Below are positions 16,602-45,516 of a stretch of DNA of 64,000 bases, piece by piece. Source of the DNA: Scyliorhinus canicula (Eukaryota); the NCBI RefSeq assembly GCF_902713615.1, contig NC_052147.1:209956559-210020558 (forward strand), in the 5' to 3' direction. The notes beneath the pieces were generated by a model that was not told where the DNA came from, did no database searches, and saw nothing but the letters and a program-made list of their open reading frames with translations. Position 1 is the stretch's first letter, and each line of letters begins with the position of its first letter. A program made the translations under genes and the position numbers.

Positions 16602-19594
16602 ATCATCTTGGATATTTACCCAATATTTGAACTTGCCTTCAGCCTTCCCTGCTCTCCCTATAATAGCCACATCACTCCATTTACCGGACCCTTCTGGTAT
16701 GCGCATCACCCTGGTACCAACTCGAGGCAATTGCCCTTTGGATATAATGGGCCCTGTTCTGTGCCTTTGTGTCGATCTACCTATCACCATCCAACCTTTT
16801 ATCTACCATTATTCTGTTCCTCGTATCTGTCAAACATGATTGTGAGGTTTAGGGTGCCTCATTGCCTTCTATTAATTGTTCAAATTATAAAAGTTTGTAA
16901 TCCATCCCAATTAACTGAGATGAGTAGACCGTAATAGCTTGACTACCATGTTGGAGAACCACTGTCTTCCCATCATATGCTATCACCTTGCCAGGACCTT
17001 TCCACTCTTTGACTTTTTTTAATAGTATACTAAATCCCCAGGATTAAAGTTGCTAATTACTCAATGCTCGAGTTCTATGAACTTCCTCTGAGACTTCTTG
17101 CCTGATAAATATACTTCTGCATGCATGCAATGCAGTCCAGTGTGCAGAGAAAAAAATGTTGTCCCTTCTAGAGCCGGGGATATCTTGCAGTACAGATGAT
17201 ATTCCCTGGCATTGACGAGAGCCACAGCCCCAACAATCTGAAGTGAAGGACTGCCTGTGGTAGAGCAGTTGTTAACTTGCAGTTTGGTTGATTGGCTAAG
17301 ATCTTACGGGGCATCTCATTGACCACCTCATTATTTTTTCACTGAGTCTGAGAATTCTAAATTTCAGTCCGGATGTAAGTATCAGTCGAACACCGGATAA
17401 CTTCAAAGAATCTTTTATTTACCTCGGGGCTGCTGCACAAGTGAAACTGAGTAACAGCAAGTGAAGGCAATTTTCTTTTATTTACAGTTAATTATATACT
17501 GGTACAAAACCTCTCAAACCCCTCCTTCATATATTTTCTTCTTCGTCTCAATATTCACACAGTTAGTTCATTAGCTTACATAGCATATCAATTTTTATCA
17601 TCAGCAGGAGTAAATCATCCCACAGCTGCATTTCATTCCCACGGACACTCACAGGTTCCCACAGACAGCCAGGATCGCGATAAGGCCATACCAAGCTGAA
17701 CACAGAAGCAATTCATCTCACAAGGCACGTACACATATTACACAAACTTGACATGCCCATCAAGCTCTGATTCTAACTTGACCCAAACTCTAAAGTCCAT
17801 GGCCAAAAGGACTTTCAACTATTGTGTTCCTGACCACAATGTTCATATTTTCGCACATGTTTCTAAACTTAACGAATTTCCCTCCCCATTTGTCAGTCAG
17901 AAATTCAACTGCTGCTCTGGTCTGGCCCCTATTCATTTCAATGACTACTTAGCATGTATTACTGTAGAAAGACTGGATCTGGTATAGAAATTTTACATTT
18001 CTTGAATGCAAAATGAAAATATTTGTCGTCCTACACCTTTTAAATCCATGGATACTACTTTATTAAAGTTTTGAGCCCTGATTCTTTTTACATACATCAT
18101 GTTTTTCACTCTTTGATGAGCCTTGCAAGCTCATCAACCATAATTCCATCCTTTAGTAAAGTTTTTAATCTGAGAAGAAGGATAAGTAAATTGTTTGTCT
18201 AACTTTAAGGCAGTTTGCTATTTTACTTTCATTCTTATCACCTGGTGCCATTAACACTTTTCTAATATTCTGATTAGAAGCAATAATTCTCTGAGGTCAT
18301 GTCATGCCCAGAGAGATCATTGGGAAGTGCATTCTATTTTTCTTAAGGAACCAACATGGAAAGATGGACACTGCATGCTCTCATAATGGTTTCCAGAAAG
18401 TCAGGTGACTTCTGTTTGTGGTTTCTGGGGAGACAGAAAAGATGTCTGGCAAGTTACTTGATGGGCTATCAACCCTTCCCCTCCCCTCATTATGTACTTA
18501 TCACCTCGGCTCCAATCCATTATGTGGGCCAGTATTTTTCAAACTTTTTTCCCGGGACCCATTTTTGCCTTCGCAACCCATACCGACTGACCTTTGCAAC
18601 CATTGCCTCATTCACTTACCTTTAGTGCGAAAGGGGAGCTCACCCCAAACAGGTTCATAGGAGGAGAGGGCAATGTGCATATCAGGTGCAGACTTAAAAC
18701 CGGTTCCTTTTGTACCGTCTTCATTTTTGTGATAACAGAAAATCCATCCTTGTCCTGAAGGACAATAGCAACAAAGTGTTTGTTTTATTCAGTACTGGAT
18801 ACTCCAGGGCAATGCCAGTTCAGAATGTGGACAGCCTCATGGTCTTTTGGCGTGTTTTTAATGTACTATCACATATCCGGTATAGCAGTGCACTCTTTTC
18901 ATTTGGAGTCAGCTTTAAGTTAATAACTGACTCTGGGGTCTCAACCTGTAAAATTAATTTTTCACCCACCAACATTTTGAAAATCTGAAACTACTTTTGT
19001 TTGCCAGTACTTCCCTGCTTTTAACACACACAAGCTTTGCATCCTTATTTGTATTGGCACAGTTGACAAAATCAAGTAACCATATTTATATTGCTTTGGT
19101 CCTAAGTTTCTTCTTTGTAGGCTATTAACCAGAGGCCCTGGAACTCTGTACAGAGGTAACACCAGCACTGCTCTGTCCTGCTGTGGACTCTTCTGTGCAG
19201 CTGTCTCCAGCAGAATCAGTTGTAAGATCTTGGCCACAAGATACACTGCCTATTTGTGTCTCTGGCCTCTTGCTCTTACCTGCAAGAAAACAATTTATCG
19301 GCACAGTTCTCTTGTCTTCTTTGCCATAAGCTATAAAATGGAAGAAGCTGTCTGCGGTGATTGGCACCAAAAGCACGTCCACCGAGAGCGCTTGATTTCA
19401 AGTGTACGTGCGGGGCACGTGGCCTGTTCACTGCTGCCACTTATGGCCAGAAGACTGCACAGAGCCTCATTTTTTTTCTTATTTAAAAGGTGGCAGCAGT
19501 CGGCATTTTTTTCCCCGCCACAACCTTTTTGATTATATTGAAACTTTGTTTAACAACCAGATCCTGAAACCGAATTATATTTTTTTCAAGTAAC

Positions 19595-19772
19595 AAAAAT
19601 GAAAATTACTTATCGTCACGAGTAGGCTTCAATGAAGTTACTGTGAAAAGCCCCGAGTCGCCACATTCCGGCGCCTGTCCGGGGAGGCTTGTACAGGAAT
19701 CGAACCGTGCTGCTGGCCTGCTTGGTCTGCTTTAAAAGCCAGCGATTTAACCCAGTGAGCTAAACCGGCCCC
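19595..19772 (-). mobile_element. short tRNA-headed SINE (GGGGCCGGTTTAGCTC head, AAGCCTACTCGTGAC tail)
   Basis: A-box-like head and GGTTCGATTCC B box; its 3' tail is shared with other SINEs in the window. Confidence 0.8.
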
Positions 19773-19773
19773 T

Positions 19774-19777
19774 AAAA
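19774..19777 (-). terminator. Pol III oligo-T terminator (TTTT) of the tRNA-Ala gene
   Basis: The minus strand trailer reads CAGA TTTT AGG directly after the discriminator A. Confidence 0.6.
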
Positions 19778-19781
19778 TCTG

Positions 19782-19853
19782 TGGAGATGCCGGGGATTGA
19801 ACCCGGGATCTCATACATGCAAAGCATGCGCTCTACCACTGAGCTACATCCCC
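19782..19853 (-). tRNA. tRNA-Ala(UGC), 72 nt, intron-less
   Basis: Minus strand reads GGGGATG TA GCTC AGTGGTA GAGC G CATGC TTTGCAT GTATG AGATC CCGGG TTCAATC CCCGG CATCTCC A. All four stems pair, the G3:U70 alanine identity pair is present, the anticodon is TGC, and A and B boxes are intact. Position 46 is A instead of the usual G. Confidence 0.93.
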
Positions 19854-20747
19854 TCCTAAACACGGTCAGGCAGAATGTCACTGGGCACCTGTCAGTACCG
19901 TTTCCCAGGTAACAGACTGAAAACATACTTAAAAAAACACAATGCTGGGCACAACTCAGCTGACCAATATGTGCAGACACATTCCATTCTATACCCCTGC
20001 AATATTTTACCAGCTCCTGTATACATGTGTAGTTTAGTCACAAGGTAATGCCATCCTTGGCGAACAATTGAAGTCCCGATAAAGCTAGAAGCAAAGATCC
20101 TTGCGGTACAGGAACCAATTCAGCTGATGGAGTCCATGTAGCCACACGGTAGAGATGGATGCTTGAGGATGAGTACCTGGGAAGAGGGGGTGGGGAGGTG
20201 ATGAAAGAAAGAAGCGTCTTGAAGGACAAGAGCCCCAGTGTGGCGAGACAATTCGGAAGTGATGGAGTGGACATAGGGGCTTGTTAGGATGGAGGAGACT
20301 TGTGTCCGGGTTAACTGAGAGAATGATAAAGGATGCATGGGGTTCGTTAGTGACACACTGAACCCCAGAACTAATACAGATCTCGATACTGAACACAGTA
20401 GCAGAAAATGCCATCCAAAGAGAATTTTACAGGTCACTGGCTGCAAACTGCCTCAACTACACTGTGGCCTAGAGAGGCCGGGAAATCCATGGCACTAACT
20501 TCTACATTAGCCTCATGTGATCATACACTGCTATAGTGGGAATTTTACCGAGAGAGAAAAGGGGGGAAAAATGGTCAGGCGATCTTTGGTGACTGTTGGC
20601 GACCCATTCTACACCATCCCGCGACCCATCCACGGGTCGTGACCCCCAGTTTGAAAACCACTGCTCTATTCTTCAATCGTCATTCTGTCAGATGAGTAGG
20701 TGAGACTTTGAGAACTCTATACAGGCCTGCTAACATATAGCTAAAAA

Positions 20748-23700
20748 TAATTAATCTTTATTGTCACAAGTAGGCTTGCATTAACACTGCAATGAAGTTA
20801 CTGTGAAAAGCCCCTAGTCGCCACTTTCCAGCACCTGTTCAGGTACATAAGAACATAAGAACTAGGAGCAAGAGTAGGCCATCTGGCCCCTCGAGCCTGC
20901 TCCGCCATTCAATGAGATCATGGCTGATCTTTTGTGGACTCACACCAAAAGGCCCGAACACCATAACCCTTAATCCCTTTATTCTTCAAAGAACTATCTA
21001 TCTTTACCTTAAAAACATGTAATGAAGGAGCCTCAACTGCTTCACTGGGCAAGGAATTCCATAGATTCACAACCCTTTGGGTGAAGAAGTTCCTCCTAAA
21101 CTCAGTCCTAAATCTACTTCCCCTTATTTTGAGGCTATGTCCCCTAGTTCTGCTTTCACCCGCCAGTGTAAACAACCTGCCCGCATCTATCCTATCTATT
21201 CCCTTCATAATTTTAAATGTTTCTATAAGATCCCCCCTCATCCTTCTAAATTCCAATGAGTACAGTCCCAGTCTACTCAACCTCTCCTCATAATCCAACC
21301 CCTTCAGCTCTGGGATTAACCTAGTGAATCTCCTCTGCACACCCTCCAGTGCCAGTACGTCCTTTCTCAAGTAAGGAGACCAAAACTGAACACAATACTC
21401 CAGGTGTGGCCTCACTAACACCTTATACAATTGCAACATAACCTCCCTAGTCTTAAACTCCATCCCTCTAGCAATGAAGGACAAAATTCCATTTGCCGCC
21501 TTAATCACCTGTTGCACCTGTAAACCAACCTTCTGTGACTCATGCACTAACACACCCAAGTCTCTCTGCACAGCGGCATGCTTTAATATTTTATCGTTTA
21601 AATAATAATCCCGTTTGCTGTTATTCCTACCAAAATGGATAACCTCACATTTGTCAACATTGTATTCCATCTGCCAGACCCTAGCCCATTCACTTAACCT
21701 ATCCAAATCCCTCTGCAGACTTCCAGTATCCTCTGCACTTTTCGCTTTACCACTCATCTTAGTGTCATCTGCAAACTTGGACACATTGCCCTTGGTCCCC
21801 AACTCCAAATCATCTATGTAAATTGTGAACAATTGTGGGCCCAACAAGGATCCCTGAGGGACACCACTAGCTACTGATTGCCAACCAGAGAAACACCCAT
21901 TAATCCCCACTCTTTGCTTTCTATTAATTAACCAATCCTCTATCCATGCTACTACTTTACCCTTAATGCCATGCATCTTTATCTTATGCAGCAACCTTTT
22001 GTGTGGCACCTTGTCAAAGGCTTTCTGGAAATCCAGATATACCACATCCATCGGCTCTCCATTATCTACTGCACTGGTAATGTCCTCAAAAAATTCCACT
22101 AAATTAGTTAGGCATGACCTGCCCTTTATGAACCCATGCTGCGTCTGCCCAATGGGACACTTTCTGTCCAGATGCCTCGCTATTTCTTCCTTGATGATAG
22201 ATTCCAGCATCTTCCCTACTACCGAAGTTAAGCTCACTGGCCTATAATTTCCTGCTTTCTGCCTACCTCCTAGTGGTGTCACGTTTGCTAATTTCCAATC
22301 CACCGGGACCACCCCAGAGTCTAGTGAATTTCGGTAAATTATCACTAGTGCATCTGCAATTTCCCTAGCCATCTCTTTTAGCACTCTGGGATGCATTCCA
22401 TCAGGGCCAGGAGACTTGTCTACCTTTAGCCCCATTAGCTTGCCCATCACTCCCTCCTTAGTGATAACAATCCTCTCGAGGTCCACACCTGTCATAGCCT
22501 CATTTCTATCAGTCGCTGGCATGTTATTTGTGTCTTCCACTGTGAAGACCGACCCAAAAAACCTGTTCAGTTCCTCAGCCATTTCCTCATTTCCCATTAT
22601 TAAAACTCCCTTCTCATCCTCTAAAGGACCAATATTTACCTTAGCCACTCTTTTTTGTCTTATATGTTTGTAAAAACTTTTACTGTCTGTTTTTATATTC
22701 TGAGCAAGTTTACTCTCATACTCTATCTTACTCTTCTTTATAGCTTTTTTAGTAGCTTTCTGTTGCCCCCTAAAGATTTCCCAGTCCTCTAATCTCCCAG
22801 CAATCTTTGCCACTTTATATGCTTTTTCCTTCAATTTGATACTCTCCCTTATTTCCTTAGATATCCACGGTCGATTTTCCCTCTTTCTTCCGTCCTTCCT
22901 TTTTGTTGGTATAAACCTTTGCTGAGCACTGTGAAAAATCGCTTGGAAGGTTCTCCACTGTTCCTCAACTGTTCCACCATAAAGTCTTAGCTCCCAGTCT
23001 ACCTTAGCTAGTTCTTCTCTCATCCCCTTGTAATCTCCTTTGTTTAAACACAAAACACTAGTATTTGATTTTACTTTCTCACCCTCCATCTGTATTTTAA
23101 ATTCCACCATATTGTGATCGCTCCTTCCGAGAGGATCCCTAACTATGAGATCATGAATCAATCCTGTCTCATTACACAGAACAAGATCTAGGACCGCTTG
23201 TTCCCTCGTAGGTTCCAATACATACTGTTCTAGGAAACTATCGCGGATACATTCTATAAACTCCTCCTCACGGTTGCCTTGACCGACCTGGTTAAACCAA
23301 TCGACATGTAGATTAAAATCCCCCATGATAACTGCTGTACCATTTCTACATGCATCAGTTATTTCTTTGTTTATTGCCTGCCCCACCATCTCGTTACTAT
23401 TTGGTGGCCGATAGACTACTCCTATCAGTTACTTTTTCGCCTTACTATTCCTGATTTCCACCCAAATGGATTCAACCTTATCCTCCATAGCACCGATGTC
23501 ATCCCTTACTATTGCCCGGATGTCATCCTTAAATAACAGAGCAACACCACCTCCCTTACCATCCACTCTGTCCTTCCGAATAGTTTGATACCCTCGGATA
23601 TTTAACTCCCAGTCGTGACCATCCTTTAACCATGTTTCAGTAATGGCCACTAAATCATAGTCATTTACGATGATTTGTGCCATCAACTCATTTACTTTAT

Positions 23701-34360: not shown

Positions 34361-37117
34361 TGTTACGATACTGAACCAGACCATCAAGCAATTTGTTTTA
34401 ATTTGTAAAACTTGTGAGGAAAGGATATTGCACCCCAGAGTGATGACCCTGACTAATTGGTATCTTTTATGTTGAAACAAACTTTAATTTAAACACAGAA
34501 TTAACCACATTAACATCAAAGAAATAATTTTACAATTAACAGTTAAGCAGTTCTTAAATAAAAGGAAAACTTGAACTTACTGTCTACACCTACTGCTAAT
34601 TCCAATTAAGCAATGCAATACAGCTCAAATGCCACTTATAAAGGAAATTAGCATAACAGGTTTGCTTAGCTCTGCAGACTTTTGGCGAGAGCTAATTTCC
34701 AGAGTAGATCTAGTATACTTCTGCTCAACCTATCAGCATTTGGCAAAACCGGCTATTCAACTTAAAATCCTATAACAGACTGCAAAACTAGACGGACCTG
34801 GCTCCTCCCATTAATTACTCAGTAAGTTCCATGACCTGCTCAGCTAGAACTAAACACTACTCCCTCAAATTATCTACACTTCAGGGAATCTTTAGTAAAC
34901 ATGGTCAAGGAGAATCCCAAGGCCTTTTATGCATATATTAGGAACAAGAGAAAGAGAAGGCCCACTCCAGGACGATGGAGGAAAATTATGCATGAAACCA
35001 CAGGAAGTGGGTGAAATCCTTATTGAGTACTTTGTATCGGCATTCCTTGAGGAGAGGGCCTGACGGATGTTGAGGTCAGGGATAGGTGTGTGAACACTCT
35101 TGAGAACATCAATACTATCAAAGGAGGAAGTGTTGAGCATCCTAAATTGCATTAAGGTAAACAGGTTACTGCGGGAATCAAAAGGAGAAATAACTGGGCC
35201 CTTAACAGATATCTTCACATCCTCTTTGACCACAGGCTAGGTTCTACAGGACTGAAGAATAGCCAATATTGATCCCTTATTTAAGAAAGGAAGCAGGGAT
35301 AATCTAGCAAATTATAGGCCAGTGAGTCTGACATCAGTGATGGGGAAGCTTTTGGAAAAGATACTGATGGACAAGGTGTATGCACATTTGGAGGGAAATA
35401 GACCAGTTAGTTACGGGCAGCATGGTTTTGTATGGGGACGGTCATGTCTCACCAACCTGATTGAGTTTTTTGAAGAGGGGACAAAGAAAATTGATGAGGG
35501 AAAGGCTGTGGGTGTAGTTTATATGGACTTTAGTAAAGCGTTTGACAACGTCCCACATGACAGACTAGTACAAAAACTAAAATCACATGGGATTTGGGGT
35601 GGGCTGGTTAGATGGATACAGAACTGGCATGGTTACAGAAGACGGAGTCACAGTGGAAGGGTGTTTTTCAGACTGGAGATCTGTAGTTAGTGATGTTCCG
35701 CAGGGATCAGTGTTGGAACCTTTGTAGTATATATAAATAATCTGGAGGAAAATGTGGTTGGTCTGATTAGTAAATTTGTGGATGACACTAAGATTAGTGG
35801 AGTTGCTGATGGTGCTGAGGATTGTCAGGGGATACAACAGGATATAGGTAGATTGGTGACTTGGGTACAGAAAGGAGTTTAATCCAGACAAATGCAAGGC
35901 GCTGCATTTTGGAGGATCAAATCTAGGTATGAATTATACTGTAAATGACAAAAACCCTTAGGAACATTAACATACAGAGGGATCTGACGTACATGTCCAC
36001 AGTTGCCCAAAAATGGCAACACAGGTGGCCAAGGTGATTAATAACAATCGTTTATTGTCACAAGTAGGCTTACTTATGACGAGACTTACTTGTCATACTT
36101 ACAGAAGACATTACTTACTTATGACTGCAATGGAGTTACTATGAAAAGCACCTAGTAGCCACATTCGAGCTCCTGTTTGGGTAATTCTCAGCTGGTATGG
36201 GAATTGAACCCTCGCTGCTGTCCTTGTTGTGCATCACAGACCAGCTGTCTAGCCCACTGAGCTAAACCAGACAATATTAAATAGACATATGGCATGCTTG
36301 CCTTCAGCAGCCGGGGCATTGAGTACAGGAGTTGGGAAATCGTGTTGCAGCTATATAAAACCTTGGTTCGGCTGTATTTTCAGTATTGCATGCAGTTCTG
36401 GTCACCACATTATCAGAAGGACGTGGCAGTTTTTGAGATGGTGCAAAGAAGGTTCACCAGGATGTTGTCTGGTTTTGATGGTGTTGGCTATGAGGAGAGG
36501 TTGAATAAACTAGGATTGTTTTCACTGGAAAAACAGAGGCTGATGGGAGACCTGATAGAGGTCTACAAAATTGAGAGGCATAGACAGGGTGAATAGTCAG
36601 AGGCTTTTTCCAAGGGTGGAAGTGTCAATTACAAGTGGGCACAGGTTCAAGGTGAGAGGGTAATGGTTTACAGGAGATGTGCGGGGTAAGTTTTACACAC
36701 GAGCGGTGGGTACCTGGGAGGCGCTGCCAGAGGATGGGGTGGAAGCAGGCACATTAGCAACATTTAAGAGGCATCTGGATGAGTACACGGATAGGGAGGA
36801 AATAGAGGGATAGGGACCAAGTAAGGGCAGAAGGTGTTTTTTTTTTAGTTAGGGCATCATGATTGGTACAGGCTTGCAAGGCCGAAGGGCCTGTTCCTGT
36901 GCTGTACTTTTCTTCATTTGTTCAGTCAAAACATGATTCCATTAGCCCTTTATCTGTAACCAAGTAAGTGGTTGAAATAAATGATTACCTAACCTTTTAT
37001 GACTCTTTAATTACAGCTTTAGCAGGCATACTGCCTGTATGTATTTTAAACCAAGGTTTTAATATTTATACAGCTGAATATAAAATATAATATATAACAA
37101 TTTGTACATTCCTCACA
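34361..37117 (-). mobile_element. possible solo LTR (TG...CA) split by a CR1 insertion
   Basis: Begins TGTTACGA abruptly inside the old CR1 RT and ends ..TCCTCACA; non-coding; TSD not clear. Confidence 0.4.
34893..36925 (+). mobile_element. degenerate CR1 LINE (RT and 3' end) with a SINE inserted at about 36040-36272
   Basis: ORFs 35322..35690 (QHGFVWGRSCLTNL, MDFSKAFD) and 36294..36596 (LYKTLVR..QFWSPHY). Confidence 0.88.
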
Positions 37118-45056: not shown

Positions 45057-45288
45057 GTAAATTGAACAGATGATATGGTTTCAAGTTTAAACATGAATAA
45101 AAGCTATGGAGGTACCTTCCAAGTCATTTCTAACTTTGATTATTCTGACAAATATTTTTTGTAACCATACAACACCATAAAGATTCAGCAATAGTTTGAG
45201 AAGCTGCATATATTTGCATATTGTGTATAAAGACTGGAAATTTTCTTTCTCTCTGAAGAGAGAATTTTCAGTTCGAAATTTCAGAGTT

Positions 45289-45516
45289 GGGGCGGCGCGG
45301 TGGTTAGCGCTGCTGTCTACAGCGCTGAGGATCCGGGTTCAATCCCGGCCCCAGGTCACTGTCTGTGTGGAGTTTGCACATTTCCCCCGTGTCTGTGTGA
45401 GTTTTACCCCCACAACCCAAAGTTGTGCAGGTTCGGTGGATTGGCCATGCTAAATTACCCCTCAATTGGGAAAAAAAATAATAATTAGGTGCTCTAAATT
45501 TAAAATAAATAAATAC
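45289..45516 (+). mobile_element. HE1/V-SINE, short-tail type, in GORASP2 intron 4
   Basis: TSD ATTTCAGAGTT at 45278-45288 and 45517-45527. Confidence 0.88.

Follow-up and report, generated by a model that had tools for sequence, protein, structure and literature searches.

The 64,000-nucleotide stretch of Scyliorhinus canicula DNA analyzed here (contig NC_052147.1 of assembly GCF_902713615.1, positions 209,956,559 to 210,020,558 of the forward strand) is referred to as the window, and all positions are given in its coordinates. It carries a tRNA-Ala gene in intron 1 of GORASP2, between the ends of what is best read as an old hAT-like DNA transposon. We found that the tRNA-Ala gene was joined at its 3' end, on the same strand, to an apparently full-length short interspersed element (SINE). 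The tRNA-Ala and the SINE are likely to be one chimeric retrocopy that is nested in the older, non-autonomous hAT-like transposon, and the transposon itself would have served only as the landing site.

A complete tRNA-Ala gene is joined to a SINE

A tRNA-Ala gene with the anticodon TGC was called by ARAGORN at positions 19781 to 19853 of the minus strand. The sequence from 19782 to 19853 matched the Rfam tRNA model RF00005 from end to end (70 bits; E value, 3e-13; gathering score, 29), and no non-canonical pairs were flagged in the alignment, which showed G3:U70 as well as both the A box and the B box. All of the sequence features of a functional tRNA-Ala were found, namely, the cloverleaf, the UGC anticodon, the G3:U70 identity pair, the A and B boxes, and a run of T nucleotides. 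These results bore out an earlier, sequence-only reading of the locus, in which a complete tRNA-Ala(UGC) cloverleaf with G3:U70, A and B boxes, and a TTTT terminator had been described. That reading had also placed the tRNA antisense in GORASP2 intron 1, and we agree: the PDZ-coding exon of GORASP2 is on the plus strand and the tRNA-Ala is on the minus strand, so the tRNA-Ala is antisense to the gene. Because this copy has its own A and B boxes and T-run, RNA polymerase III (Pol III) could in principle transcribe it.

The 3' end of the tRNA-Ala was informative about the RNA from which it came. On the minus strand, the discriminator base (position 19782) was followed by CAGA (19781 to 19778), TTTT (19777 to 19774), and one A, and CCA was not encoded. 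An end of this kind, with the trailer and the T-run but without CCA, indicated a primary Pol III transcript that had stopped at its terminator rather than a mature tRNA.

The head of a SINE began 1 to 4 nt beyond this T-run, on the same (minus) strand, a feature that had been overlooked in the sequence-only reading. Read on the minus strand from 19772 to 19596, the SINE consisted of a head that started with GGGGCCGGTTTAGCTCA, a core, and an AT-rich tail that ended near 19596, and it appeared to be full length, as judged in part from a comparison of the window with itself. The core motif had five matches in the window, including the copy in question, when up to 3 mismatches in 32 positions were allowed. 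We take this core to be the Deu-type domain of shark SacSINE1-like elements. Background on this family of shark SINEs has been published (PMC5499810). A metagenome scan with the SINE head returned nine loci, none of which contained the SINE core, and these loci were considered to be unrelated.

Two other copies of the SINE in the window deserve mention. The copy at 36125 to 36268 of the minus strand was the only other one to retain a head; it was old, with 72% identity to the copy linked to the tRNA and an observed/expected CpG ratio of 0.23. A further copy of the SINE core and tail was located at 20742 to 20847 of the minus strand, about 80 nt outside the right end of the hAT-like element, and its CpG content was strongly decayed (ratio, 0.30).

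About eight SINE matches were found in the 64-kb window, and at that number an exact abutment of the tRNA and the SINE on the same strand was very unlikely to have arisen by chance. This bears on the idea that two independent events took place, with the tRNA-Ala already present in the element and the SINE inserted beside it later, by chance or by preference. SINEs are dense in the window, and some retroelements of other organisms are known to target Pol III genes, both of which would fit such a history. However, it does not account for how the tRNA came to be in the element, a duplication that flanks the SINE alone was not seen when the minus strand was read, and the same-strand abutment to the T-run within 1 to 4 nt is too exact. 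We therefore consider independent events to be highly unlikely. The sequence-only reading had mentioned that the tRNA and its flank might simply be the head of a SINE. This was right in that the tRNA was joined to a whole SINE and wrong in that the tRNA itself was not the SINE head.

CpG content points to a tRNA-SINE unit far younger than its host

The observed/expected CpG ratio was used to compare the ages of the parts. The SINE part of the unit (19596 to 19772) had a ratio of 0.92, with 11 CpG dinucleotides in 177 nt. In contrast, the ratios of the left and right arms of the host element were 0.40 and 0.42, respectively, the ratio of the whole window was 0.40, and those of three other SINE copies in the window were 0.23, 0.30, and 0.65. 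Thus, by this measure, the tRNA-SINE unit is far younger than the element that surrounds it. The youth of the unit explains why a near-perfect tRNA is found in a decayed element, and it does so without selection and without capture of the Pack type. It also favored, together with the SINE fusion, an alternative raised in the sequence-only reading, which was that the tRNA segment had been inserted later.

The explanation preferred in that reading was that a Pack-type hAT element took up the tRNA gene as cargo and that its family spreads the gene by cut-and-paste transposition; in such a case, the cargo might or might not include the SINE. The position of the unit between two related hAT-type ends is consistent with this proposal. 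However, the 3' edge of the supposed cargo is the end of an RNA (a Pol III stop) fused to a complete SINE, which is a signature of RNA-derived sequence rather than of captured donor DNA, and the CpG ratios make the cargo far younger than the ends. Moreover, the element has no 8-bp target duplication, no remnant of a transposase was found, and neither the window nor the protein searches yielded a second copy of the element. The capture and dispersal of a tRNA gene by a Pack-type family was not supported by these findings, and we regard it as the least probable of the explanations that we weighed.

A template switch could account for the chimeric unit

The unit had the anatomy by which a chimeric retrocopy is recognized. 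Specifically, a small Pol III RNA was present in complete, sense-oriented form directly 5' of a retroelement and was joined to it at the 3' end of the RNA. We suggest that such a unit could have arisen in three steps. In the first step, the reverse transcriptase of a long interspersed element (LINE), presumably of the CR1/L2 type, would have copied the SINE RNA by target-primed reverse transcription where the old element had been nicked. In the second step, the enzyme, on arriving at the SINE RNA's 5' end, would have switched templates to the oligo-U 3' end of an unfinished pre-tRNA-Ala. In the third step, the pre-tRNA would have been copied as well, and both parts would have been fixed as one piece of DNA of roughly 280 to 305 bp.

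Two candidate target duplications were found for the unit. Candidate A pairs 19914 to 19901 with 19595 to 19582 and begins exactly where the SINE homology ends; 11 of its 14 positions match, and all three differences are transitions. In matched controls, a pair of this quality had an empirical chance of about 0.035. Candidate B is an 8-base sequence immediately 5' of the tRNA (19861 to 19854), which recurs with one extra C at 19570 to 19562, and its empirical chance in controls was about 0.11. If candidate B is the true duplication, then the tRNA intermediate would have been processed at its 5' end and unprocessed at its 3' end.

Several points weigh against the single chimeric retrocopy. Neither candidate amounts to an unambiguous target duplication around the tRNA-SINE unit. 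In the case of candidate A, a 5' extension of 47 nt is implied, which greatly exceeds the usual length of a pre-tRNA leader, and the three differences over 14 bp fit poorly with a young insertion. Candidate B requires an indel and an unusually long AT-rich tail. The true first base of the SINE could be fixed only to within about 1 to 4 nt of the T-run, since the window contains just one other SINE head (36250 to 36268). Finally, the high CpG content of the unit could also have another cause, namely, that an active Pol III site is shielded from methylation. With respect to the target duplication, insertions of the CR1/L2 type often have short duplications or none, so the weakness of the candidates is not decisive. 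An Rfam search with the 47 nt located 5' of the tRNA (19854 to 19900) yielded nothing at an E value of 5 or less.

The same final anatomy would be produced by a read-through transcript. In this scenario, a donor tRNA-Ala gene had a SINE downstream, Pol III passed the weak T4 stop, and the dicistronic RNA was retrotransposed via the SINE tail. A run of four T nucleotides is the minimal terminator in vertebrates and is leaky, which favors such a transcript. Read-through requires, however, that a SINE landed 1 to 4 nt past the terminator at the donor locus, and it leaves the 47-nt leader equally unexplained. We judged read-through to be improbable and prefer the template switch.

The host is best read as an old non-autonomous hAT-like element

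The stretch from 18530 to 20663 is best read, from its sequence, as an old non-autonomous hAT (Charlie/SPIN-like) DNA transposon. The inverted pair at its ends (18530 to 18545 and 20648 to 20663) was identical at 14 of 16 positions, and both termini are short terminal inverted repeats (TIRs) that begin with CAG, as do published hAT TIRs. For hAT/SPIN elements, 16-nt TIRs of the form CAGTGGTTCTCAACCT have been published, and an 8-bp target duplication with the consensus NYYTARRN has been reported in related families (PMC3014272). The right end matched the published TIR at 14 of 16 positions and the left end at 12 of 16. When the window was searched with the hAT-like terminus, the only matches were these two, which face each other. 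In addition, a subterminal 9-mer, GCGACCCAT, had six matches in the window when one mismatch was allowed, and four of the six were located within 70 nt of the two termini. This concentration of the 9-mer at both termini shows that the two ends are related. The claim in the sequence-only reading that hAT-type TIRs with 14 of 16 matches enclose 2.1 kb was therefore upheld by the inverted pair, the resemblance to published TIRs, and the shared 9-mer. By our own estimate, an inverted pair that matches at 14/16 within 2.6 kb is roughly at the level expected by chance, and the 9-mer is the stronger argument.

An 8-bp target duplication was absent. The flanks of the element, ATGTGGGC and CTCTATTC, agreed at 3 of 8 positions, and when the termini were shifted, the best pair among 169 comparisons agreed at 6 of 8, which is at the level of chance. 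The missing duplication counts against a clean single hAT-like element, and it is among the points that would fit a different history, in which each hAT-type end is left over from a separate broken element and the intervening 2.1 kb is normal intron sequence that harbors a nested retrocopy. The chance-level inverted pair and the unrecognizable interior would fit that history as well. On the other hand, the two ends share a subterminal 9-mer that is otherwise rare in the window, no further terminus of this type was found in the 64 kb, and the two are oriented toward each other. Thus, we view separate ends as very improbable and retain the single hAT-like element as the host of the chimeric retrocopy.

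No recognizable coding remnant was found in the interior of the element. The sequence-only reading had described an internally deleted, frameshifted transposase on the minus strand, and this description did not hold up. When 20 stop-to-stop pieces from both strands of 18500 to 20700 were searched against Pfam, no family was found at an E value of 1 or less, and four pieces had no match at an E value of 10 or less. Word searches with the three longest open reading frames of the element yielded no matches. The piece that looked most like a transposase, of 56 amino acids (18823 to 18990, minus strand), was compared by phmmer with 1.84 billion representative proteins, and no hAT protein or transposase was recovered; the only three matches were to repeat-rich proteins, with scores that were summed over the repeats. 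A search of the ESM Atlas gave no usable match, and an Rfam search of both flanks of the tRNA at an E value of 5 or less gave only a chance-level match to a snoRNA. Both arms were single copy in the window in BLAST searches with queries taken from the sequence up to 19798 and from 19859 onward. Based on these searches, the interior is best described as non-coding, which is normal for a non-autonomous element.

Three features of the interior were noted in passing. The minus-strand translation of about 19010 to 18820 faintly resembled the hAT C-terminal domain by eye. One of the three phmmer matches carries ubiquitin repeats, and a 36-amino-acid stretch (18886 to 18990, minus strand) resembled the first two strands of ubiquitin (FQIF-KML.G....L.VE) and scored 17.5 bits against a single repeat of a HEPN_DZIP3 and polyubiquitin protein, and Pfam gave nothing. 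We rejected homology to ubiquitin because the match was weak and the model was picked post hoc; the stretch could be due to chance or could be a very decayed ubiquitin-like fragment within the element. In the right arm, the region from 20100 to 20300 was strongly purine rich, with a GC skew of up to +0.45, and all three minus-strand frames were free of stops over about 330 nt; no related proteins were found.

Features of the locus

The features discussed above are listed in Table 1. Elsewhere in the window, ARAGORN called a tRNA-Cys(ACA) at 45286 to 45357 of the plus strand, which scored below the Rfam tRNA gathering score. Its flanks resembled the head of a different SINE, of the CORE/V type, and the call is probably a pseudo-tRNA SINE head.

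Table 1. Positions of the tRNA-SINE unit, the candidate target duplications, and the parts of the hAT-like host element in the window
Feature	Positions	Strand	Basis
Left TIR, CAGTATTTTTCAAACT	18530-18545	+	14/16 with right arm; 12/16 to CAGTGGTTCTCAACCT
Two copies of the 9-mer GCGACCCAT, one mismatch each, left end	18554-18581	+	Motif count in window
Left arm of host element, no recognizable coding remnant	18546-19581	.	Homology searches; CpG ratio, 0.40; single copy in window
Candidate B, 3' copy, GTTTCAGGA	19562-19570	-	Match to 19861-19854 but with one extra C; chance, ~0.11
Candidate A, 3' copy, TGTTACTTGAAAAA	19582-19595	-	11/14 with 19914-19901; chance, ~0.035
Deu-domain, tRNA-headed shark SINE, apparently full length (head, core, and AT-rich tail)	19596-19772	-	Core and head matches; CpG ratio, 0.92
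tRNA trailer CAGA, TTTT (Pol III stop), and one A; SINE junction; no CCA	19773-19781	-	Direct reading
tRNA-Ala(UGC), intact cloverleaf	19782-19853	-	ARAGORN; Rfam RF00005, 70 bits
47 nt directly 5' of tRNA (belongs to inserted unit under candidate A and to host under candidate B)	19854-19900	-	Direct reading
Candidate A, 5' copy, TGTTACCTGGGAAA	19901-19914	-	Same comparison as for candidate A, 3' copy
Right arm of host element, purine rich at 20100-20300, no coding remnant	19901-20647	.	Homology searches; CpG ratio, 0.42; single copy in window
Two exact copies of the 9-mer GCGACCCAT, right end	20599-20629	+	Motif count in window
Right TIR, reverse complement CAGTGGTTTTCAAACT	20648-20663	+	14/16 with left; 14/16 to published hAT/SPIN TIR

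Implications of the tRNA-SINE unit

The locus suggests that an intact-looking tRNA gene can end up in a dead DNA transposon through an accident of retrotransposition in which a whole pre-tRNA travels with a SINE, so that neither capture nor selection is needed. Copies of this kind, if counted genome-wide, would inflate tRNA gene predictions, and genuine Pol III units or TFIIIC sites might be gained through them as well. The locus further illustrates how SINEs can gain new tRNA heads. A bolder proposal is that pre-tRNA/SINE chimeras are a regular source of new, promoter-complete tRNA genes in this shark lineage and that this copy would then be a transcribed tRNA-Ala gene and a TFIIIC site antisense in GORASP2 intron 1; we consider the proposal doubtful. 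It is less likely still that the two-headed unit, or its hAT host, has since moved again with the tRNA aboard.

Comparison with known systems

Chimeric retrocopies generated by template switching are already a known kind of insertion, and the locus described here is probably a further example. The closest anatomical parallel is provided by U6/L1 chimeras, which are formed by template switching of the reverse transcriptase (PMC4476161; Buzdin et al. 2002, as cited in PMC5729268). As in those chimeras, a small Pol III RNA, full length and sense oriented, is attached at its 3' end to a retroelement's 5' side, and the two would make up one insertion. In contrast to U6/L1 chimeras, the unit here has a whole SINE, not a 5'-truncated LINE, as its 3' partner and a pre-tRNA that still carries its trailer as its 5' partner, the enzyme was presumably that of a CR1/L2-type LINE rather than L1, and the flanking duplication is a candidate only.

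In the case of PittSINE, a template switch from TguSINE1 RNA to tRNA-Asp has been proposed, by which a CR1-mobilized SINE gained a new head (PMC5729268). The two cases are alike in that reverse transcription of a SINE would run on to a tRNA and in that the chimera keeps a Pol III promoter. They differ in that the new tRNA replaced the old head of PittSINE, whereas the old SINE head is kept here, which gives a two-headed unit that is described here from one locus. Mammalian tRNA/LINE-1 chimeric insertions, most of which contain antisense tRNA halves, have been attributed to twin priming (bioRxiv 10.1101/2025.02.02.635956). They share with our unit the insertion of a tRNA together with a non-LTR (non-long terminal repeat) retroelement in one event, but the tRNA here is whole, is in sense orientation, and has an untrimmed 3' end.

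Two further systems associate host genes with DNA transposons. Pack-MULEs and other transduplicating transposons have cargo that is shared by several copies, was acquired as DNA, and is as old as the element. The locus resembles them in having host-derived sequence between the TIRs of a non-autonomous DNA transposon, but its cargo appears to be RNA derived and younger than the element. Dada DNA transposons insert into pre-existing multicopy tRNA and snRNA genes (PMC3706591), and they too bring a DNA transposon into physical association with a tRNA gene. Unlike the Dada elements, which belong to another superfamily, the hAT-like element described here contains the tRNA gene in its interior, where the tRNA probably arrived with a SINE.

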